From the NCBI GenBank assembly GCA_025594325.1, contig JANHCV010000007.1, positions 1,240,001-1,304,000 on the forward strand: DNA of 64,000 nt. The letters run 5' to 3'. The notes beneath the pieces were generated by a model. That model was not told where the DNA came from and ran no database searches. It saw nothing but the letters and a program-made list of their open reading frames with translations. Both the position numbers and the translations under genes were made by a program. The DNA comes from Blastocladiella emersonii ATCC 22665 (taxonomy: Eukaryota > Fungi > Blastocladiomycota). Shown here piece after piece: positions 3,416 through 39,554 of the stretch (within the stretch, counting starts at the first letter, position 1; each line of letters opens with the position of its first letter).

Positions 3416-3862
3416 TCAGGGATTTTTCAGCTGTTCCGGATACCCGTAGACCACTTGGTGGGCAAACTTGTGTCCCATGCTCTCCTGGTACTTGATCCAC
3501 TCCTTGCTTGGTCCCTGGACCGTGAAGAACCAGTATCCATCCTGCCCGGATTTGGGCTTCTTCTCGACAAGGTCTGGGCTGGGTTGGTGACGAGCAACGC
3601 CACGCTTTGGCCCTGGAGAACCTTCTGCGGCTGAAGGAGTTACGGGCGAGGCTTCGCGTTGCAGTACGAGCGGAAGCAACAATTCGAGATGGTTCATGGT
3701 GTTGCTGAACGACGTATTGATCCCTTCGAGCTTGGGCATGGTCCCGGTCAGCGCAAATCCGAGCTCGCTTACGTAAGCCTGAAAGTAGCCGGCCTCAAAC
3801 GCGCTCATGTCCATCAACCAGTCTGTTACCTCCTCTGGGCGGACATGAGCTGATACTTGCAC
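3416..3862 (-). CDS. Orphan ~148-aa protein, island-1 family copy A1
   Basis: Intact ATG-to-stop ORF with clear similarity to the ORF at 4598-5050 (AHVRP, TGTM, HLELLLPLV, GxWFFT, YQESMGHKFA). Confidence 0.7.
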   Translation of the reverse strand: MQVSAHVRPEEVTDWLMDMSAFEAGYFQAYVSELGFALTGTMPKLEGINTSFSNTMNHLELLLPLVLQREASPVTPSAAEGSPGPKRGVARHQPSPDLVEKKPKSGQDGYWFFTVQGPSKEWIKYQESMGHKFAHQVVYGYPEQLKNP

Positions 3863-4461
3863 GGCTTGTAGCGGAGCCCGACGAACACGCGTTGAGTTCG
3901 AGCGGGATGCACAAGCTATGTTGCAAACGTCAGTAAATGCGTCCGGGAATGCAGGACTCGCTCGAACGTGCCATTTGCAGGCTGCGCAGTTTCGACCTGC
4001 GAGTGGGTGCTTCCTTGCTCGCTCGCGTGCGACGCAGCTGCAAGCGGTGTCGAGTCGTTGGAAAGCATGGTTAGTGGGGAGCTAGTGCGGTGGTCGTCAG
4101 TTGTTGCTCTCGCCGTTCGCTTGAGAGAGCAAGCTCGCTTGGCCGCTCCCTACTCGACGGCTCACAACACGGTGCATTCATCCAGCTGTCATACCGACAT
4201 TTCGCTTGTGGCTAACGCGACCTCCAAACATGCTCTTATCCACAATAATGACTTGATGCTCGCGCTCGTCGCCATCGAGCAACAAACGGAAGCCAAGAAT
4301 CAAAGCCGTTTGCGCGCCGTCTTCGTTGCAGCTTTGGTGTGCACGCACGCGAAGAACGAGTTTCAAGCCGAGTGTTAAAAATATTCATCCATTCCCACCA
4401 ACATGACGTTTAGTGCCAAAAGCTGCTCCGAGCGCGACGGAGGGCCGTGGAGCAATCCGGT

Positions 4462-4486
4462 GCGAGACGCGTCGATCAATCACGTG
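4462..4486. promoter_or_regulatory. Composite element GCGAGACGCGTCGATCAATCACGTG (MCB-like ACGCGT + GATCA + E-box CACGTG), copy 1
   Basis: Identical over 25 bp to 39530-39554, with a variant at 37300-37323. All three copies are intergenic. Function is inferred. Confidence 0.55.
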
Positions 4487-4597
4487 AGGCGCGAGACACG
4501 GTCAGCGGAATGCTCCGTTGCCGACCAGCAATGCATTCTCGATCACAGATGCCAAGATGTAGCGCAAAAACTCCAAAAGTGTTGAAACAGATTGTAT

Positions 4598-5050
4598 TCA
4601 CCAGCGATTTTGAACTGCAAACTTGTGCCCCATGCTTTCTTGATAGGCGAGCCAGTCCATGTTAGGCACTCGTCTGGTGAAGAACCAGATACCGAACGCC
4701 GATTCGTGCGAGTATACCGTTTCCGACTTGAATTTGTTTAGACGTCGCGGAGGTAGGCCCTTGATCGGTCCCTGCGCCCCCTCGCAAGGAGCTGAGGCCG
4801 CCGAGTCATCTTCAGGTGACGTTACCAATGGGAGCAGCAGTTCGAGGTGCTCCACAACATTCGCCAACGAAGTTTCGTCGTCGAACTCGAGCATGGTACC
4901 AGTGACGACCCACGCGAGTTCTTTTGTGAATGCCTTGAGGCAAGCACAGTAGAAGGCACTCCTGCGCGACACGTAGCTCGAATCTTCCGCGGGGGGTGCT
5001 TTTGGACGAACATGCGCAGCCTTCAGCGAGTTGAGACTCGAGCTCTTCAT
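4598..5050 (-). CDS. Orphan ~150-aa protein, island-1 family copy A2
   Basis: Intact ORF paralogous to 3416-3862, with conserved blocks HLELLLPLV and WxxYQESMGHKFA. Confidence 0.7.
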   Translation of the reverse strand: MKSSSLNSLKAAHVRPKAPPAEDSSYVSRRSAFYCACLKAFTKELAWVVTGTMLEFDDETSLANVVEHLELLLPLVTSPEDDSAASAPCEGAQGPIKGLPPRRLNKFKSETVYSHESAFGIWFFTRRVPNMDWLAYQESMGHKFAVQNRW

Positions 5051-5918
5051 GCCGTCAGCGTCGTGAACACCTACTATTCACTAACGAAGTCAGCTTTGAA
5101 AGCCCGCTCTGACAAGCTGCTTGCGGTAAGGGTAGACCAACGCAAGTTCCGGCGAACGCGAGCGAACTTTGTGCTCGCAACAGGAACGGAAACATCGTAC
5201 CAGCATCGCTTCCCGACTTGGTGCACACGTCGAAGCCTGTCTCGCTTACACTCATTTTAAATTTGGTCAAACGAAGCTGCCCCGAGATTGGAGAATGTCA
5301 GCGTTCGTTGAAGACCAGTTTTCACGGAGTGGAAAAGTGGACTTGACAAGCGGATTGGCAGTGCGAGGTGGCGACCTGTGCAAAGGAGCGAAGGAGAGCA
5401 GACCGACTTGCATCGCGCCTGCACGTTTTGAGACGCATGTAGTCGTTCGAGATGGTCAGCGCACAGCGCGTGATGCGCTGCGCCACCTGCTGCCTCGGGC
5501 GAATAGCTTGACAAATTCATGAATGCGCTTTGTAGAACGCTGTATCTTGACGGCACCTGTTTTCGTTGCATGACTCAGGCAATTCAACACGTCTCAGCGA
5601 GGTTTTGAAGTAGTCTGGCGGTTTCCTCCACCTCCGCGACGACGTGGACTCGCGCTCCCACTGCCGAGGGATCGAGTCAACTTTCAGCTTAGTTGTCAAG
5701 GAGGTTCTTGAAAGCGGTGGCGATGCCGCGCTCCTCGAGGCGTACGAGGGTCCGACAATTCAATCACGACCTCGCAGGCGGTCCTCGGCGCGACCGAGAC
5801 GGATCACGCCTCGTGAGCGACTCGATCGTTTCGTGGTGTACATATCCCGCGTCGTTCCACCATCCGTTCGCCGCTTATCCCACTCAAACATGAGTTTGTT
5901 CAAAACAAACATCTCTTT

Positions 5919-6359
5919 CTATTCATCAGGCTTTGATTCGCTGGAGCTCTCGACTGGTTCCGTCTTGTCGGTACCGTCCGCTTGCTCGACTGAGCGCAGC
6001 TTCGTCGATTCGTGCGGAACAAAGGTCCAGTGTCCGTAGAGTGCCCAGCGGGCTGCAGCGCGAACTTGTGTGACGGCAGCGAGGTCTCGGGGAACTGGCT
6101 CTTGGACTTGTTCAATCAATGATTGAAGGTGAAGGTAGATCTCCTTGACATCAGGTTTATCGGAACTGTAAGGTTTCTTGGTCACCGTTTTTGTAAAGCG
6201 CCGGGCAAACACGAGAAGCCGGTTGTAATCGGCCTGCTTTACAGTGTCGAGCAAGGGTCCTGGTGGCTTCGGGACCAAGTGCGACGGGCATCCTCGCATC
6301 GGACGCCGAGGAAGCGCGGCAGCATGCATTCGAGCCATATCTGGGGCGTAGCTGGCCAT
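5919..6359 (-). CDS. Orphan ~146-aa protein, island-1 family copy B1 (reading frame stays open upstream to ATG 6605)
   Basis: Paralog of 7038-7532 (RRPMRGxPSHLVPKP, KQADYNRLLVF, EPVPRDL, QVRA..RW..YG.W.F). ATG 6359 (MASY) aligns with the MASN start of B2. Confidence 0.72.
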   Translation of the reverse strand: MASYAPDMARMHAAALPRRPMRGCPSHLVPKPPGPLLDTVKQADYNRLLVFARRFTKTVTKKPYSSDKPDVKEIYLHLQSLIEQVQEPVPRDLAAVTQVRAAARWALYGHWTFVPHESTKLRSVEQADGTDKTEPVESSSESKPDE

Positions 6360-6660
6360 GGTTGGGGAAAATGCTGTAGGTCGGATGGTGGCCGTAGCGG
6401 TGAGGGCGGCGACACGGCCGTTTTGGTCTGAAAAGTGTCCTTGGTGGTCGTATCCGGTGTTGGGACTCTCTCGCGACCAGCGCTGCAACTCGACGTGAGA
6501 GAGACAGTGAGTGACTGGGTCAGGAGGAGCTGTGAGGAGGACGGCCACGTTGCCACAACTCAATGCACAGACAGAGCAATGGATTGACAAGCCGTTTGAA
6601 TGCATTCACGACAACGTACATCAGAAAGATGGTGTGATTCCGTACTGCGCGACGGCATGC

Positions 6661-6678
6661 GATCATGATGTGACGTCA
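6661..6678. promoter_or_regulatory. Duplicated upstream element GATCATGATGTGACGTCA containing the CRE/ATF palindrome TGACGTCA (upstream of B1)
   Basis: Identical over 18 bp to 7777-7794, at the equivalent position upstream of paralog B2. Confidence 0.5.
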
Positions 6679-7037
6679 TGAGCACGCGGACATGTTTGCG
6701 CGTCCCGTCTCGCCACGCGACGCTGGGGCACAAAAACGAGAACAGTTGCAGACTCGATCGCAGATGATGAGAACATGCAGCGCAAAGTACTTCCAAAAGC
6801 GCTGAAACGGGTTTTGTTCACCAGTACGATGCCAACAGACTATCAGTGGGAGCGGATTGCTGGATAACGCGAGAGAGCAAAGTCCTGACAATTTATACCG
6901 CTATTTTCGGCTCAGTTCGTGCATGCTCCGTTGCGCGCGACTCGCTGCGTTACCTGAGCGCTGCACTACTCCTATGCTGCGGCATAAGACGAGAAACAAT
7001 CTCATATCCGTGTCGCATAAATGACATGTATATTTTT

Positions 7038-7532
7038 CTACGCAGGTCGTTCTCGCATCTCGTTGACCGAGTTCGGATCCTCGCCCATCTCCTCCTCCAA
7101 ATCGCTGGACCATGTCGTGCTCGCGATATCGTGTGAATTGGTCGACGCAAGCAGTTCAAAGTGCCAAACGCCGTAGATTCCCCAGCGCGACGACGCGCGG
7201 ACTTGAGCAGGAGCGGTGAGATCTCGAGGAACTGGCTCTCGAACGCGGTATGGCAACGATTCGAGGTGCTTGAGGACCTCGGCGTCAGACGGTTTCTTGG
7301 CAAGGTATGGCTCCTGCGCAACGCGCGCCGTGAGACGGCGGGTAAAGACGAGCAGCCGGTTGTAGTCGGCCTGCTTGATAGTGAACAGGGGAGGCCATGC
7401 CGGCTTCGGAACCAAATGGGATGGGTGTCCGCGCATCGGGCGACGAGGTCGGGCGGCCGCATGAATCCTGGTTGGGTTTGGCGCGAAGCCAACCACGGGT
7501 GGGGAAGCAGAGGAATGGTGGTTGCTGGCCAT
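7038..7532 (-). CDS. Orphan 164-aa protein, island-1 family copy B2
   Basis: Intact ORF with extensive identity to B1, as above. Confidence 0.72.
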   Translation of the reverse strand: MASNHHSSASPPVVGFAPNPTRIHAAARPRRPMRGHPSHLVPKPAWPPLFTIKQADYNRLLVFTRRLTARVAQEPYLAKKPSDAEVLKHLESLPYRVREPVPRDLTAPAQVRASSRWGIYGVWHFELLASTNSHDIASTTWSSDLEEEMGEDPNSVNEMRERPA

Positions 7533-12014: not shown

Positions 12015-13419
12015 CTAGTCCATGGTGCCGGCAACGTGCTTGTCGCGCTCGGGGACGCGTGGGCGGACCTTGTCGGGGTTCTTGGAGTTTTTGCGGACGT
12101 TGTCGTCCTTTTTCGCGCGGGCGTCGAGCATGATGCGCTTGAGGTGGTTGGCGTTCTTGATGGCCTTGGGGACGAGGCGGTTCTTGGCGACCTTGCGGAC
12201 CGTGTCGAGGTGCAGGTACTTGTCGCGGGTGGCGGTGGCGGTCAGAACCGCGGCCTTCTCGCGGGCGCTGCGGATGGCGAGCGTGTCCGAGGCGTTGGCC
12301 TTCCACAGGCGGATGTTGCCGTCGTCGGACCCGGACAGCACGTACTTGGCGTCCATGGAAAAGCGCACGCACCACAGCCGCTGCATGCGCTTGGTGTGGT
12401 ACACGTCGCGCGAGTGACCCGACTTGGCGTCGTACACGCGCATCGTCTTGTCGTAGGCGCCCGTGACGAGCTCGTTGCCCGCGGGCGAAAAGTCCACGTC
12501 GAGCACCGCCGACACGTGGTCCTTGAGCACGTTGGTCGCGCGCTCCATGCGCCGCATGTCGAACAGGTACGTGTTGTGGTCCTCGTTGGCCACGGCAAAC
12601 TGGTAGGGGACCATGGGGTTCCAGCACAGCGCGTTGGATGTCAGGTTGAGCACCAGCTTCTTGAGCGGCTGGCTCATGCGCGTGTCGTACAGGATCACGG
12701 CGCGGTCGGTCGACGTGGACGCGAACAGCGTCGACTCGGAGTGGTTGAACCGCACGCTCGACACGGTGTCGGAGCCCCACGAGTAGGTCTGCACGGGGTA
12801 CGACCGCTGGTGGTCCCACAGGTCGACGGCGATGCCGGCGGTCGCAAAGGTCGAGTCGGTGCGGTGGTGGTCAATGGCGGTGAAGGCGTTCTTGCCCGTC
12901 CACGTCGACAGCGGGGTGGCGAGGTTGTGGGCGTCGGTCGACCACAGCTTGACGACCTTGTCCATGGCGCACGACACGAACTGGTTGCTGTCGGGGACGG
13001 CGGCGAGCCCGCGCACGGTGCCGCGGTGCGCGCCCGTGATGACGTGGGTCGACTTGCGCTGCGACAGACTCCATATCCGGATCTCGCCGTCGGCGCAGCC
13101 CGAGTAGATCCTATCGAGGATCGTCGGGTGCTTGGCCATGGCGTAGACGCCGTCGTTGTGGCCCGACAGCGCGGCCACAAAGGGCTTGGCCATCATGCGC
13201 TCCACCTTGGCCGCGGTCACGGCGCGCACGTACTCGCGGCCCTTCTCGAACGGGTGCAGCGTCGGGTCCAGGTTGCGCGGCAGCTTGTACACGTCGCCCG
13301 CGCGCTCGCGCGTGAAGTCGGTCGCGTTGCGGGAGATGGTTTTCACTTTCTACACTCGTCGGCCGTGCGGGGTTGGTTTCATGGTCGTTGCAGAGAGATA
13401 CATGATGCGGGCTCACCAT
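12015..13419 (-). CDS. SOF1: DCAF13/SOF1 WD40 protein (SSU processome, U3 snoRNP); exon 1 is the ATG only
   Basis: M|KVKTISR N-terminus via intron 13416-13350, then PRNLDPTLHPFEKGREYVRAVTAAKVERMMAKPF, YHTKRMQR and DDGNIRLWKA. Sof1 C-terminal domain present. Confidence 0.96.
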
Positions 13420-33306: not shown

Positions 33307-33621
33307 TCCGCGCCCGCACCCGCTTTTTGACGACCTCCTCTTTTCCTCCCCCCTCCTCCCTGTCTCCATTCATCCCGCGTTTCTCTCTCCCTCCCTCTCT
33401 ACCTCCCGCATGTACCTGATAAACTGAGATATATCCATCCATCACGTAGCCCAACAGCATGACGCGTTCCGAGTGAAACCGCCACGCACGCGTTCTGACC
33501 AACGCGCACGCGCCGCTGAGCCCTCGGTCCCCCGCCACGTTCGCCGACGCAAACGAATGAATCTGTCTCTTGCTGCTTTGACATCAGGACTTGCTGCAAA
33601 GTAACTGCGTACCTCGGCACC

Positions 33622-35179
33622 ATGGATTGCCCGAACGCCGCTCGCTTTGCTCGCACACGGAGTCAGGCTCGCGCTGCCACGTCAGCGCCCGGGTCTGATT
33701 TGCCCGAACTGCGCCGCTCGAAGCGCCCTCGGACCAGCTCGGCCGTTAGCGCCGGTGTTACCGTCGAATTGGATCTCAAGCCGCCGCACCAACGAGCGAA
33801 CTCTAGTGATGCGAGCCGTGCTGCTGCTTCCGCTGTCACGCTGCTGACCGACGGCGAGTCGGACTTTGCTGAACTTGAGCCCCGCCGGCGCATTGGTCCT
33901 GCTTCTCGAACACAGCTCAACAAGCGGATGCGTGGTGGCGACATTGTGATCGAGTTACCGGCCTTCTCTCGCTTGTCAAAGAACGGGGTCCGGTCGGGGC
34001 TGGGTCTCGCTTCCGCTTCTGTCGCCAGGCCCACCTTCGACGCAGTTGCGTTTGACGTCAGCAACCTTCCGCTCGCGGAACCGGCCGCTTCGAAGTCACC
34101 ATTGGAGCTACCCGAGGACCCGCGGTCCAACGTAAACGTGCGCACGCACGACGTGGCCCGCCCCTCTGATGAAAGCTCGCTCTCGGATTTGTCTGATCAC
34201 GAGCTCGACGCATCTACTGATGACAGCGAGGCGATTGCTGCTGTTCAAACACACTCACCCGAGGCGCGGGACATGGTACGACTTTGCGACATTCACCGCC
34301 GCCGCCCGCTTGTGCTGACAGCTCTCGTATACCCAGTCGGCCCGTGAGACGGACTCGGCACTGGATAGCTCTACGGATCCGTCAGTTTCTTCGCCTCATG
34401 CAAATGTCGCGCAACTTACAGCGGCCGTCGAACCCGTTGTTGTCGTCGCTTCCCCTGTCGCGCCTGTCGACGACGTACTTGCCGCTCAACTCGCCATACT
34501 TGAAGCAGAGTCCGCTGCTCACCGATCATCGCTTGCCAAGGAGCTCGCCGAGCATCGCACAACGCTTGACCGTGAGACTTCCTCCCATCGAGCTTCGCTG
34601 GCCCAAGAACTCGAGGCGCATCGCGCGGCGCTTCACGACGAGGCTACTACGCACCGTGCGACGCTTGCTCAGGAACGCGCCGTGCACCGCCTCGCTCTTG
34701 AAGAGGAACGCGGCGCGCTCCAGGCTTCACTCGAAGAGGAGCGGAACTCGCACCGCGCGGGACTCGAGGCGGAGCGTGCCGAACATCACGCTGTACTTCA
34801 TCGTGAGATTGCCGCGCACCGCGCGACTCTCCAGGCAGAGCGCGCCGTGCAGAACGCGATGCTCGAACGCAAGTTGTCTGAGCAAAGTGCAGCGCTCGAG
34901 GCGGAGTACGCGGCGCGTCGTGCTTCGCTGGAGACCGAGTGGGTCAAGCAGCGGGCCGCCTTCGAAGCCCAGCTTGCCTCGCGCGACGCGACGCTCAACA
35001 ACGAGCGGTCTATGCACCAGGTCGCGCTCGGGACGGAGCGCGCCAACCATCGCGCGGCACTTGACGAGGAGCACAGCGCACATCGCGCGACGCGCGACGA
35101 GCGGGATCGACTGGCTGCCAAAGTCACGGCCGTTGCAGCCATGTCAGGAGCGATTGTAGCGATGTGTCGCGCCGACTGA
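33622..35179 (+). CDS. Island-2 paralog C1: basic/Ser-rich head + 11-residue-repeat coiled coil, ends AMCRAD, 2 exons
   Basis: A GTACGA...GCTGAC...CCCAG intron (~34277-34336) joins ORF 33622-34347 to the frame of 34682-35179. Motifs SKRPR and SLSDLSD. About 18 ExAxHRAxLxx units. Confidence 0.72.
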
Positions 35180-35384
35180 GAGCATCGTATTAATGCTATC
35201 GTGATTCATACCGCTCAATCGGCCTCTCGAGCGTCCCTTGCACTCAGCGAACGAACCCCTGACTTGCGCACTCGCTCTGCCTTCAGCTCCTCCTCCCTCC
35301 ACCTTGCACTCTCACGTAAACACATGCATTTGCCACGCACGGCACTTCCCGCAATTTATTGATGCAAGCTATCTGAGCAACCTT

Positions 35385-37165
35385 ATGAATCCCAAGAACC
35401 CGCCCAAGGCAACTCGCACGCTCAAGCGTTCGCGCTCGACCGCCAGCACGGCCTCGGCGCCGTCGAGCTCCTCGTCGTCCGTCGCATCTTCGCCTGGTGG
35501 GCCCCGACCCGAGTCTGCTGATTCTGAGCAGAACCTATCGAAACGTCCGCGAATCAGCACGCCCGCTGATGCTGACGCTGCAACTGCTCTCAAAACTCCG
35601 AGGCGGGTTCCCGAGCAGAACCCTATTGCTTCGCGCGCCCTTGGCTCCGAGCCCACCGGTAACGAATCTTCGCCTCTTGCTGCCGCAGCCGCCGCAGCCG
35701 CCGAACCCTCCCTCGCCAATTCTGGCACCCGTTCGCGTATCGACCCTGCGGCCAAGGCTGCCGCGAAACTGCAGAGGCTGCAGAAAACTCTCGCAATCGA
35801 TATGCGTGATCAGCCCGCCTTGCCCAAATCTCGGCGTTCCGCCCCCGCTTCCACCCAGGCTACTTCCCGCACTAAGCATGCGAAAAGACGGCCTGCCGCG
35901 GCTCGAGTTTCCGTGGTGGTGCCCAAGCAGCCCGAACCCCGGCCCAGTTCGCTTCCACTTGAAGCTTTTTCCAGCTTGTCGGCTAAGCATGCTGCTTCCG
36001 CTTCCAAGGGTTCGGTTAGTGGACGCACGACTCGTACTTCCGCTGAAAGCGAAATTTCGGACCTCTCTGACTCGGACGACGGGATCGTTGGCGCGCCCGC
36101 CCGCGAATCCGTACGCTCGCTTCCAGTCAGGGAGGTTCGAGATCAGGTGCGTCAATCTTCATTTGAGTTCAGCAATTGCAGCTGCTGACCGGCAAACGAC
36201 GAGTGTAGCCATCAAGCGAAAACGGTACGGCGCCCAGCATCCTCGCGCGTCCAGTTCCAGTCTCAGCTTCACTTTCTGAGCCCGTATCTGCACCCGCGCC
36301 TGCACCTGCGCCCAAGGTGTCTTCCGTCATGGTCGCTGGTATGGGCCGAGGTCCTCCTCCTACGGTGCGGCGCGTGCAAATGGACTTGTATGATCGCTTT
36401 CCCCCTCCTTCCGTATTCAAGTTTGCTGGAGCTGTCGTTCACGCGACTCCTGCACCCGCACCTCAAATTGCCAAGGAACCGGTTGCCTGCCGCCCTGCGG
36501 CCGACGAGGAGCTTGCCACGCGCCGCGCGACGCTCGAGCAAGAGTTCGCCGCCCGCCGCGCCGCGCTCGAAAAGGAAATTGCTGACCGTCGCGCCGCGCT
36601 TGATGTCGAGTTTGCCGAGTACCGCACGACCCACGACGCGGCGCTCGAGAAAAAGCTTGCCGAGCACTGTGCCACGCTTGACGCGAAACTGGCCGAGGCG
36701 CGCGCTGCCGACCGTGTCGCATTTGACGCGGAACTGGCCGAGGCGCGCGCTGCCGACCGTGTCGCATTTGACGCGGAACTGGCCGAGGCGCGCGCTGCTG
36801 ACTGTGCCGCGTTTGATGCGCAACTCACTGAAGCGCGCGCTGCCGACCGCGCTACGCTTGACGCGCAACTGGCCGAAGCGCGCGAAAAGGAGATCGCTGA
36901 CTGCCGCGCCGCGCTTGGCCAAGAGTTTTCCGAGTACCGCGCGGCCCACGACGCCGCGCTTGAGAAGAAGCTCGCCGACTACCGTGCCACGTTTGACGCA
37001 AATCCGGTCGAAGCCCGCGCCGCCGACCTTGCAGCGCTCAAGGCGGAGCGGGCGGCGCACAAGGCGACGCGCGAAGAGCTCGAGCAGGTCAAGGAGAAGC
37101 TCGAGACTACGAAGAAGGCTGCGGCTGCGGTCGCGGACGTGGTCGGTGCGCTCTGCCGCGCCTGA
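35385..37165 (+). CDS. Island-2 paralog C2: basic/Ser-rich head + 11/15-residue-repeat coiled coil, ends ALCRA, at least 2 exons
   Basis: ATG 35385 has a 5' leader homologous to that of C3. A GTGCGT...GCTGAC...TAG intron (36147-36208) joins to the frame of ORF 36317-37165. Motifs ATRTLKRSR, SKRPR, LQRLQKTLAIDM and EISDLSD. Confidence 0.75.
36678..36882 (+). repeat. Coding 45-bp tandem repeat (~4.5 copies; ELAEARAADRVAFDA)
   Basis: TTGACGCGGAACTGGCCGAGGCGCGCGCTGCCGACCGTGTCGCAT units; the first copies are nearly identical. Confidence 0.9.
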
Positions 37166-37299
37166 TCACCCGCGAAACGCGCTGCTTGCCCCGATATGAT
37201 TACCCACAGTTTTGTTCAACTGTCATACATTGCTCATTCCTTCACCTGTCTGGTCTAAATCTGCGAGCGAGCGGTCTGTGGTGAGGCTTGAGGCATGAA

Positions 37300-37323
37300 G
37301 AGACGCGTTGATCATAACACGTG
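37300..37323. promoter_or_regulatory. Composite element variant GAGACGCGTTGATCATAACACGTG, copy 2
   Basis: Same three palindromic cores (ACGCGT, GATC, CACGTG) in the same order as 4462 and 39530, with one extra spacer base. Confidence 0.5.
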
Positions 37324-37952
37324 CGCACGCATCAACGCGTTGCCGCTGGGCGCGCACTTCACCTTCAGCGCGTTCGAGTGGAACCAGCTTTTCCTACAAC
37401 GAGGTTCAGTACCAGGTACCTGTTGCGGCTGGAATGCAGTGCGAAGACGTGATCGACTGACGCCGCCAACTTGCCGCTCCTGGCCTCCACTAAGGATTCC
37501 AGAAACCAGCTGTCAGGACGCAAGTATCGTCCTGGAACCATCTTCTCTGCTGCCACTGCTGCCCCCGAAAGTTCATGGTCCCGTGCATGTTGCTTTGGTA
37601 AGCCGGCTGCGAGCCATGGACGACGCATCTCGTGCGTTCCTGGCTGACAAGCGGGACGTTCGCCGAATCGTGTGCGTGAGGTTTGCATCTGCAGTCTCAG
37701 CAACTCAAGCTCTGAGCCGCGCTATCTGAATTCATTCGAGCCCTTCGGGCTTTTTCTCAGCCATAGTCGTCCAGGTCGCGGCCGGCCGGAGCAGGGACGC
37801 GGTGGGCTCGCTCGACGCGTTCAGCCCGCCACGCGCCCGGCTTGAACGACGCGCTTCCCCCTGCTCCCGCTTCCCAGCAACACGCAAGCTGATGCACTCG
37901 CCGCGCCTGGCACTTCATGCAATCACTTCATGCAAACAATCTGTGCATCTTT

Positions 37953-39293
37953 ATGAGTCCCGATAACCACGTCAAGGCCACGCGCACCCTCAAGCGCTCG
38001 CGCCCCGCCTCGCCCTTCGCGGCCTCCGGCGCTTCGTCGTCCGCCGCCCCTTCGACCGGTGGGCATGGAAACGAGTCTGTTTCCGAGCCGAACCGCTCGA
38101 AACGCCCGCGGATTAGATCGTCCAAATTCGGCTCTGTGGTCACTATCGACGACAGTGCTGATCACGAGCTCGCCGACGCCAATGCTGCTTCTCTCACTGC
38201 CGACGCGCTCGAGTCCGTCGACTCTGGTACTCGCTCGCGCCCCTCAAAGATGCAGAAGCTGCAGAAGGAGCTGGAAATCGACATGAACAATCAGCTCGTC
38301 TCGCCCAAGTCTCGACGCCGCGCTTCCACTGCCGCTTCCGCCACCGGCCGCGCTAAGGCGCCTCAGCATCGGCCCACGGTGGATCGTTCCAAGGACAAGT
38401 CGTCGAATTCCACGATTGCCTTGATCCGTACTCCCGCCACCGTCAACCGCACCACCACCACCGCGATTATTGCCGCTCCCAAGAAGTCGCGCGGTAGACT
38501 CGCACCTCCTGCTTCCGCCGACAGCGAGCTCTCGGACGTGTCTGACGGCGGAGACGAATTGGCCGTTGATGCACCGGCCCATCATGACGAGCACTTTCAT
38601 CCGCAGCCGCCCACAGCCGGGAAGGTTTTGGACAAGGTACACGACATCTCACTCCGTGTTTAACCGCTGGGTGACGCTGACAAGGTCATGACTCTGTGGC
38701 CCGTGGACCAGACGGATACTGCTCTGATCTGCCCGCCGCGCTCTTCCCTGCCTACACGTCCAGGGTCCGCGAGCGGACTCGTGCCCAACGATTCACCCGG
38801 TCATTTGGCGAGCACGAGCTTTCAAGCCCGTCCTCTGCAGCATCAGCCGATCCAGCCGGCCCCGCGCGGCCGCGTTCATGCCGATGTCGACCATCACATC
38901 GAGGCGGCAGATCTCATGCGCGCCACGATTGAAAAGGAGCTCCGCGCCGAGTTCGCCAAGCTTCGCGCGGCGGACCGCGTGGCTCTCGAGACGTCGCAGA
39001 CGACGCTCTCGAACACGCAGGCGGCGCTTGTCGAGTCGCAGGCGGCCCTCGCGGCGGAGCGGGAAGCACGACGTACGGCGGAGACGGCGCGCGACACGAC
39101 GCAGGCGGCCCTTGCAACTGAACAGGCGGCTCACGCCACGACGCGCGACGCAACGCAGGCGGCCCTCGCGGCGGAACAAGCAGCTCACGCCGCGACGCGC
39201 GCCGAGCTCACGCAGGTCAAGGAGAAACTCGACGCGACGAAGAAGGCGGCGGCTGAGGTTGCTCAGGGGTTTGGAACGCTCTGCCGCATTTGA
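37953..39293 (+). CDS. Island-2 paralog C3: basic/Ser-rich head + 18-residue-repeat coiled coil, ends TLCRI, 2 exons
   Basis: A GTACAC...GCTGAC.AAG intron (~38636-38684) joins ORF 37917-38663 to 38688-39293. Motifs ATRTLKRSR, SKRPR, MQKLQKELEIDM, ELSDVSD and HAATRAELTQVKEKLDATKKAAA. Confidence 0.75.
39099..39206 (+). repeat. Coding 54-bp tandem duplication (TQAALAxEQAAHAxTRxx)
   Basis: Two adjacent 54-bp units starting ACGCAGGCGGCCCT. Confidence 0.8.
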
Positions 39294-39529
39294 TTTTGCG
39301 CAGCAGCTCTGCGCTTCCGTTTTAACCTTCCTTATTGCTATAAATATCTTTTAATCACATTCAAGCTGCCGAATCGCGTGTGTGAGAGTGGGTCGCGTCG
39401 CCCGCGTGAGATACAGGGTGAGACGCGTAGGTCTCGAGAGATGTCGTTTTCTACGCTCATGATTGTTTTTCGTGCCTCGTATGACGAGCGAAGCAGAACG
39501 CGTCGAGAAACGCGAGCGGGAGACGCGCC

Positions 39530-39554
39530 GCGAGACGCGTCGATCAATCACGTG
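39530..39554. promoter_or_regulatory. Composite element GCGAGACGCGTCGATCAATCACGTG, copy 3
   Basis: Identical over 25 bp to 4462-4486, with extra GAGACGCG copies just upstream at 39420 and 39520. Confidence 0.55.

Follow-up and report, generated by a model that had tools for sequence, protein, structure and literature searches.

An apparently lineage-restricted tandem trio of genes encoding head-and-rod proteins in Blastocladiella emersonii

The window analyzed here is a 64,000-nucleotide stretch of the genome of the blastoclad fungus Blastocladiella emersonii ATCC 22665 (GenBank assembly GCA_025594325.1, contig JANHCV010000007.1), and all coordinates refer to positions within it. Between positions 33622 and 39293, the plus strand carries three genes, designated C1, C2, and C3, that are arranged in tandem and head to tail, each with one phase-0 intron. 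Their features are listed in Table 1. A preliminary description of this DNA, made from the sequence alone, had proposed three head-to-tail plus-strand genes with an intron between the coding regions for a head and a rod; every coordinate of that proposal holds, and the phase-0 intron is shared by all three genes. The predicted proteins are ~498 residues long for C1, ~572 residues for C2, and either ~421 residues (with a 75-nt intron) or ~430 residues (with a 48-nt intron) for C3.

Table 1. Features of the C1-C3 locus and its immediate surroundings.
Feature	Position	Strand	Description
C1 leader/proximal promoter block	~33530-33621	+	~90 nt, homologous before each ATG
C1 exon 1	33622-34275	+	218-aa disordered head; ARTRSQAR 33649-33672, SKRPR 33718-33732, SLSDLSD 34177-34197
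C1 intron	34276-34336	+	61 nt, phase 0, GTACGA...CTGAC...CAG
C1 exon 2	34337-35179	+	280 aa + stop; predicted single helix residues 45-279 (34469-35173); C-terminus AMCRAD
C1 hendecad array	34514-35107	+	18 eleven-residue repeats, consensus A-a-H-R-A-x-L-e-x-E-R; old array
C1 conserved C-terminal segment	~35042-35179	+	
C2 leader/proximal promoter block	35295-35384	+	~90 nt, homologous before each ATG
C2 exon 1	35385-36146	+	254-aa head, ATG 35385; ATRTLKRSR 35409-35435, SKRPR 35538-35552, LQRLQKTLAIDM 35769-35804, EISDLSD 36051-36071
C2 intron	36147-36208	+	62 nt, phase 0, GTGCGT...GCTGAC...TAG
C2 exon 2	36209-37165	+	318 aa + stop; residues 1-95 predicted disordered, 96-317 (36494-37159) predicted helix; C-terminus ALCRA
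C2 young tandem array	36678-36884	+	45 nt (15 aa, AEARAADRVAFDAEL) x 4.6 copies, 85% matches
C2 conserved C-terminal segment	37016-37165	+	AALKAERAAHKATREELEQVKEKLETTKKAAAAVADVVGALCRA
C3 leader/proximal promoter block	~37865-37952	+	~90 nt, homologous before each ATG
C3 exon 1	37953-38636	+	228-aa head, ATG 37953; ATRTLKRSR 37977-38003, SKRPR 38097-38111, MQKLQKELEIDM 38250-38285, ELSDVSD 38526-38546
C3 intron, preferred model	38637-38711	+	75 nt, phase 0, GTACAC...GCTGAC...CAG; read by eye
C3 intron, alternative acceptor	38637-38684	+	48 nt, phase 0, also in frame
C3 exon 2	38712-39293	+	193 aa + stop; Ala/Thr/Gln-rich rod, C-terminus TLCRI
C3 tandem array	39084-39201	+	54 nt (18 aa) x 2.2 copies, 84% matches
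C3 conserved C-terminal segment	39144-39293	+	73% DNA identity to C2
12-nt tandem repeat	39497-39543		AACGCGTCGAGA x 3.8; carries ACGCGT sites; lies past the C3 stop and ahead of the next gene (ATG 39809)

All three introns begin with GT, contain a CTGAC-type branch site, and end with AG, and each lies 25-28 codons downstream of an acidic motif of the form S/E-[LI]-SD-[LV]-SD. Introns of B. emersonii have a size mode of 60-79 nt within a range of 55-333 nt and a CTAAC-like branch site (PMC2773782), and the 61-, 62-, and 75-nt introns of the trio agree with both that size mode and that branch signal (PMC2773782). For C3, we prefer the 75-nt model because the 48-nt option is shorter than the reported minimum of 55 nt and puts the branch site too near the AG. 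The start codons of the three genes align with one another (MDCPNAARFARTRS, MNPKNPPKATRTLKRS, and MSPDNHVKATRTLKRS); C3 has a second in-frame ATG candidate at 37917.

Given that the high-GC DNA of the window produces long spurious open reading frames (ORFs) on both strands, the length of an ORF alone is no proof that it is coding. The three genes carry other marks of coding sequence. When the head exons of C2 and C3 are aligned as DNA, each of the nine gaps has a length divisible by three; in the flanking non-coding alignments, this is true of only one of three gaps and one of two. The ratio of nonsynonymous to synonymous divergence (dN/dS) among the paralogues is 0.35-0.5, a value somewhat flattered by the protein-guided alignment on which it is based, and the third codon positions differ most; synonymous divergence itself (dS) is at or past saturation. 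Within the array of eleven-residue repeats (hendecads) of C1, Leu at position 7 is kept in 16 of the 18 units, Glu at position 10 in 15, Ala at position 5 in 14, and His at position 3 and Arg at position 4 in 12 each, with synonymous codons mixed among the units, and unit-to-unit identity at codon positions 1, 2, and 3 is 0.59, 0.61, and 0.39, respectively. The position and the phase of the intron are also kept in C1, C2, and C3. These genes are genuinely protein-coding. Antisense ORFs of 263-298 codons shadow the C2 rod on the minus strand (36269-37165) and have their source in its GCN-, GAR-, and CGN-rich sense codons; we regard them as shadows of the sense frame because the variable position would fall at their codon position 1. 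Gene callers could mis-annotate the antisense strand of the C2 rod.

Similarity searches, here and below, were conducted exon by exon, as was structure prediction, for which exon 2 of C1 and exon 2 of C2 were folded. BLASTP comparisons between the paralogues gave E values of 4e-16 for the C2 and C3 heads, 5e-14 for the C1 and C2 rods, and 5e-10 for the C2 and C3 tails, and the C1 head can be aligned to the other heads at their motifs only. The motifs that the three proteins share are therefore explained by paralogy and not by convergence. Protein and profile searches of the whole 32.65-Mb genome, the latter having been proposed as a check in the preliminary description, returned C1, C2, and C3 only; weak matches on contigs 4 and 20 (E values of 0.003-0.007), which we considered as further paralogues, were gone in the profile search. 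The published ATCC 22665 assembly comprises 34.27 Mb in 21 contigs with an N50 of 2.02 Mb (PMC9730499). The trio is best explained as a family that arose by tandem duplication at this locus. The leader and the core of the promoter were part of the duplicated unit, since ~90 nt of homologous sequence precedes each ATG. Each leader contains an upstream ATG at the same alignment column (33557 in C1, 35324 in C2, and 37892 in C3), which opens an upstream ORF of 15, 12, and 24 codons, respectively; the C2 and C3 upstream peptides match at 8 of 12 residues, and the C3 upstream ORF overlaps the main ATG. These upstream ORFs could exert translational control, provided that the transcripts begin upstream of their ATGs.

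The heads are 218-254 residues long, are rich in Ser, Ala, Pro, and Arg, and give no fold signal, and their net charge is +17 in C2, +8 in C3, and -3 in C1. Their short motifs nevertheless come in a set order: a basic cluster at the N-terminal end (ATRTLKRSR in C2 and C3, ARTRSQAR in C1), SKRPR, which is invariant across all three proteins while its flanks diverge, an LQKLQKxLxIDM-type element, and an acidic S-[LI]-SD-[LV]-SD patch (SLSDLSD in C1, EISDLSD in C2, and ELSDVSD in C3). The motifs had been described in this order beforehand, and all of them are present as described except for a detail of the LQxLQK element (LQRLQKTLAIDM in C2 and MQKLQKELEIDM in C3), whose first residue in C3 is M and not L. 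The sequence K-[KR]-x-[KR] is the core of the classical monopartite nuclear localization signal (NLS) bound by importin-alpha. Each head contains two to three K[KR]x[KR] matches, compared with ~0.35 estimated by chance from composition, and all such motifs of the three proteins lie within the heads, with KRPR in C1, C2, and C3 and KRSR in C2 and C3. Judging from these matches, SKRPR in all three proteins and KRSR in C2 and C3 probably drive nuclear import. Phosphorylation-type sites in the heads comprise the acidic Ser patch, which is of CK2 type, and one full cyclin-dependent kinase site, TPRR, in C2. The heads probably carry both partner-binding and phospho-regulated elements.

The AlphaFold2 models of exon 2, computed as monomers, each contain one unbroken helix, of 235 residues in C1 (residues 45-279) and of 222 residues in C2 (residues 96-317). 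The predicted local distance difference test score (pLDDT) of these helices is mostly above 90, and they would measure ~33-35 nm if straight. The architecture predicted for each gene product is a head, a linker, one helix of ~125-235 residues built from non-heptad repeats, and a tail of ~45 residues with a Cys-Arg pair. The repeat unit differs from one paralogue to the next, being 11 residues in C1, 15 in C2, and 18 in C3, and these lengths correspond to 3.6-3.75 residues per turn. The hydrophobic periodicity of C1 is dominated by a period of 5.5 residues and shows a further one of 3.68 residues, both harmonics of 11, with no peak at 3.5. If the C1 repeats are placed on an 11/3 helix, a stripe of Leu accompanied by His and Arg would occupy one face and a stripe of Ala the opposite face. 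Hydrophobic residues (LIVMFWY) make up 16-19% of the rods, Ala 23-31%, and charged residues 27-37%, and pairs of opposite charge at i and i+4 occur at 5-8.5 per 100 residues.

Several established classes of long helix were considered for the rods. A canonical heptad coiled coil is rejected on the basis of repeats of 11, 15, and 18 residues and approximately one Leu per 11 residues in C1. Thus, of the earlier proposal that the rods are coiled coils, the long helices stand as predictions, and heptad periodicity does not, there being about one strong hydrophobic residue per 11. A single-alpha-helix domain is unlikely, given that charged residues amount to only 27-37% and LIVMFWY to 16-19%, and a lipid-binding amphipathic helix is unlikely as well, given a mean hydrophobic moment of 0.15-0.19.

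All three rods end in AH.ATR.E ... [ML]CR[AI](D), in agreement with the H.ATR.E...[LM]CR ending that had been noted previously. The last ~45 residues (AAL..E.aAH.ATR.E...L...A.A...[ML]CR) are the best-conserved part of the rod, and the proteins end with CRAD in C1, CRA in C2, and CRI in C3, that is, with zero to two residues beyond Cys-Arg. Rod length varies by repeat expansion specific to each paralogue, with both ends fixed.

To look for relatives outside this genome, we used Pfam models, Protein Data Bank (PDB) sequences, the ESM Atlas, word-index searches, and a hidden Markov model (HMM) of the heads. The six exon translations yielded no hit to the Pfam Filament or lamin-tail models at E values up to 1 and no family above its cut-off, and a search of PDB sequences yielded no significant relative. 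In the ESM Atlas, the C2 head and the C1 rod returned generic coiled-coil clusters only, at 0.82 or below, and queries of a word index with both head and rod of C2 returned no relative; the length window of the word search makes full-length relatives of 450-600 residues visible only partly. The HMM of the three heads, a search with no such limit but confined to heads, found no true relative among 1.84 billion representative proteins. Its sole match, the bacterial repeat adhesin P0001, is spurious, being the sum of eight chance matches to VTDVSDSGNELVD. Viral and metagenome scans likewise returned no relative, and Rfam identified no non-coding RNA. A match to a known family or to a transposon protein, which the preliminary description had named as an observation that would count against a new family, did not emerge from the Pfam, PDB, ESM Atlas, word, or HMM searches.

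The reach of these searches can be gauged from Sof1, a highly conserved protein encoded elsewhere in the window (12015-13346, minus strand). Its best matches outside this genome are those of Catenaria anguillulae (79% identity), Blastocladiella britannica (74%), and Allomyces javanicus (73%), and chytrids come next at ~55%. With identity to the nearest sequenced relatives down to 74-79% even in so conserved a protein, counterparts of a disordered head or of a low-complexity rod could easily escape recognition in those species. The designation of the trio as orphan therefore stands in that no relative appears in the searches made, and is weakened by this sampling; it may reflect fast evolution in a poorly sampled phylum. 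The trio is a genuine, undescribed, apparently lineage-restricted gene family of generic head-and-rod design, and the layout that had been anticipated, in which a long helical rod follows a disordered head and leads to a Cys-bearing tail, is borne out, the helices of C1 and C2 being AlphaFold2 predictions.

The base composition of the trio also sets it apart from its surroundings. GC content at third codon positions (GC3) is 60-75% in the six exons, compared with 92.6% in a flanking ORF of 3115 codons and 86-96% in neighbouring genes. In the four-fold families checked (Ala, Ser, Leu, Arg, Thr, Pro, and Val), T-ending codons account for 19-29% of codons in the trio and for 2-6% in the flanking ORF, which confirms the earlier remark that T-ending codons are more frequent here than in the flanking genes. 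Local intergenic GC is 53-60%. The low coding GC3 may reflect weak codon selection or weak GC-biased conversion in fast-evolving genes that are expressed at a low level or at particular stages.

We compared the trio with known systems. Like lamins and lamin-like nuclear intermediate filament proteins such as Dictyostelium NE81, the proteins combine a head, a long helical rod, a Cys in the tail near the C-terminus, and an NLS-like basic motif, and a role as a self-associating nuclear scaffold is conceivable for them. However, they have no sequence similarity to lamins and no match to the Pfam Filament (PF00038) or lamin-tail (LTD) models, their rods lack heptads and the consensus rod ends of intermediate filaments, and their NLS-like motifs precede the rod, whereas the NLS of lamins lies between the rod and the Ig-fold tail. 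An Ig-fold tail is itself missing from the trio, and the Cys is not part of a CaaX box, the residues that follow it not being aliphatic. The resemblance to lamins, as it had been proposed earlier, is thus one of layout only: the arrangement of head, rod, and Cys tail stands, and every lamin-defining feature tested came out absent.

Hendecad and pentadecad coiled coils are known from tetrabrachion and from the bacterial cytoskeletal proteins Scy and FilP. Repeats of 11, 15, and 18 residues with 3.6-3.75 residues per turn, as in straight or right-handed coils, and very long unbroken helices are features that the trio has in common with such non-heptad coils. It differs from them in having no homology to them and in a core that would be unusually polar, built on a single Leu in every 11 residues that has His and Arg as neighbours, with a stripe of Ala on the opposite face; oligomerization of the trio is only putative. 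With tropomyosin-type Ala-rich coiled coils, the proteins share an unbroken helix of ~220-235 residues and an Ala content of 23-31%, but they lack heptads and a match to the tropomyosin Pfam model and have a large disordered head. Non-heptad coiled coils and Ala-rich rods such as tropomyosin may be regarded as the nearest analogies in kind, with homology to neither.

The reading that we favour is that the trio proteins are elongated nuclear tethers or scaffolds, and taken as a whole we consider it about evenly balanced between right and wrong. Its parts differ in strength. We are highly confident of the genes, of the family, and of the architecture. A nuclear location, suggested by the head motifs, is a tentative proposal for which we would claim somewhat less than even standing, and a scaffold function, suggested by the predicted rods, is similarly tentative. 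On this reading, the conserved K[KR]x[KR] clusters would act as import signals of the importin-alpha type, and the helices striped with Ala and Leu would pair or bundle, via the conserved C-terminal segment, into elongated homo- or hetero-oligomers. The tail Cys would cross-link chains or carry lipid. The ends of the resulting tethers or scaffolds would make specific contacts, and rod length could vary freely. Low GC3, together with the recent growth of the C2 repeat array, would mark a fast-evolving family that is probably expressed weakly or at particular stages.

A number of observations weigh against this proposal. Motifs of the K[KR]x[KR] type are frequent in disordered basic regions. The AlphaFold2 rod models describe monomers, and with a single strong core residue, Leu, per hendecad and with His and Arg at core-facing positions, a stable coiled coil would not be assured. 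The position of the Cys, -3 in C2 and C3 but -4 in C1, does not amount to a consistent lipidation signal, and a disulfide is unlikely in the reducing nucleus. A GC3 of 60-75% beside neighbours at 86-96% would agree with weak expression or weak selection. The HMM search with the heads missed C1, C2, and C3 themselves, although the sister database does include Sof1 from this genome; the trio genes may be absent from public annotation.

If the proteins are indeed nuclear rods or tethers, they would represent a lineage-specific structural system in an early-diverging flagellated fungus in which closed mitosis, the nuclear cap, zoospore formation, and cell biology at large are poorly understood in molecular terms. 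They would further illustrate how, in nature, a long non-heptad helix can vary in length through expansion of its repeats and yet retain constant end motifs. For now, the main contribution of the locus is a further validated orphan family in a genome that seems to have many of them. The species is under development as a model organism, and the trio would be cheap to tag in it. A bolder version, which we judge very unlikely, is a blastoclad-specific nuclear filament or tether system that would serve as a lamin analogue in a lineage without lamins, located either at the nuclear envelope or at the zoospore's nuclear cap, which is filled with ribosomes, with two-faced Leu/Ala non-heptad helices (repeats of 11, 15, and 18 residues) that assemble laterally, the conserved, hydrophobic Cys-Arg tail as anchor, and a length tuned by repeat expansion.

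Apart from a nuclear tether or scaffold, the trio might consist of diverged members of a known fast-evolving nuclear coiled-coil family, such as those of the synaptonemal complex, kinetochore, spindle pole, or nuclear envelope, that have drifted past detection. Such families typically keep just short motifs and a coiled-coil layout, and at the distance of the nearest relatives (Sof1 at 74-79%) a fast-evolving protein could be invisible; the Pfam, word, ESM Atlas, HMM, and PDB searches, for their part, gave no significant match. A weak match in its favour, between 47 residues of the C2 tail and the DASH subunit Dad2 (PF08654), was rejected, since its 18.4 bits fall short of the cut-off of 26.9 bits and the ~572-residue protein is about five times the size of Dad2; proteins of the Dad2 family have ~100-130 residues. 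The hexamer ACGCGT, which resembles the MluI cell-cycle box (MCB), occurs in pairs upstream of C1 (33462 and 33488) and of C3 (37303, 37335, and 37815), in keeping with this explanation, but it is absent upstream of C2 and is not enriched in the window (55 observed versus 52 expected); all eight sites in the island are intergenic. Moreover, three tandem paralogues with differing repeat units would be unusual for single-copy core machinery. We consider descent from such a family unlikely.

It is likewise improbable, in our judgment, that the trio consists of lineage-specific genes, either of recent origin or under weak constraint, that have hardly any settled function or none and reside in a low-GC3 island that breeds tandem orphans. 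Their GC3 is near the intergenic GC content and far under that of their neighbours, dN/dS is just moderately low, the 45-nt repeat of C2 expanded recently, and a second island in the same window, island 1, also contains tandem paralogous orphan ORFs. The paralogues are nonetheless old, with dS at or beyond saturation, and over this old divergence the order of the motifs, the position and phase of the intron, the reading frame across indels, and the pattern of the hendecads have all been kept, which requires sustained purifying selection.

A third alternative places the proteins outside the nucleus, as helical-repeat proteins like group-3 LEA proteins, apolipoproteins, or perilipins that would coat membranes or lipid droplets or guard zoospores or resistant sporangia against desiccation. 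The 18 tandem 11-mers of C1 and the hydrophilic, Ala-, Glu-, and Arg-rich composition of the rods, with their basic residues, recall these proteins, and the only match among PDB sequences was apolipoprotein A-I, at a non-significant E value of 0.47 that reflects shared 11-mer periodicity only. Against this stand the low hydrophobic moment of the rods, the lack of a match to the LEA_4 and apolipoprotein Pfam models or to any other model of these families, and the variation of the repeat period, the 11-mer being found in neither C2 nor C3; what is conserved in the trio is its head motifs and its tail, and 11-mer amphipathic proteins have nothing equivalent to the long disordered head, with its basic clusters, or to the conserved tail with its Cys. 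We therefore regard this alternative as quite unlikely. An origin of the trio as viral or mobile-element cargo, or as a remnant of either, would account for the lower GC content of the island (62.5% versus ~70% in its flanks) and its atypical codon usage but is extremely improbable, as Pfam reveals no domain of a transposase, integrase, reverse transcriptase, or capsid protein, neither terminal inverted repeats nor long terminal repeats are present, no second copy was found in the genome and no relative in viral contigs, the intron signals are of host type, and there is no signature of repeat-induced point mutation or CpG depletion (TpA/ApT of 0.49, (CpA+TpG)/(ApC+GpT) of 1.14, and CpG observed/expected of 1.3).

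Several observations were made beyond the trio itself. Sof1 of B. emersonii is nearer to that of Catenaria anguillulae (79%) than to that of Blastocladiella britannica (74%). As judged from proteins, the genus looks either deeply divided or non-monophyletic. In the neighbourhood of Sof1, B. britannica shares the HOY1-like homeodomain gene only and Catenaria shares nothing. A six-frame first look with the Pfam Tektin model gave no match in the genome, though the zoospores are flagellated, which is either a limit of the method or a real absence; we treat this blank as uninformative because the genome carries the rhodopsin-guanylyl-cyclase fusion, a blastoclad hallmark. Island 1 (3416-7532, minus strand, ~55-57% GC) contains two pairs of tandem paralogous ORFs of no obvious family, one at 3416-3862 and 4598-5050 (39% identity, E value of 5e-29) and the other at 5919-6605 and 7038-7532 (60% identity, E value of 1e-48). 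In this genome, islands of low GC3 seem to act as nurseries for orphan genes in tandem.

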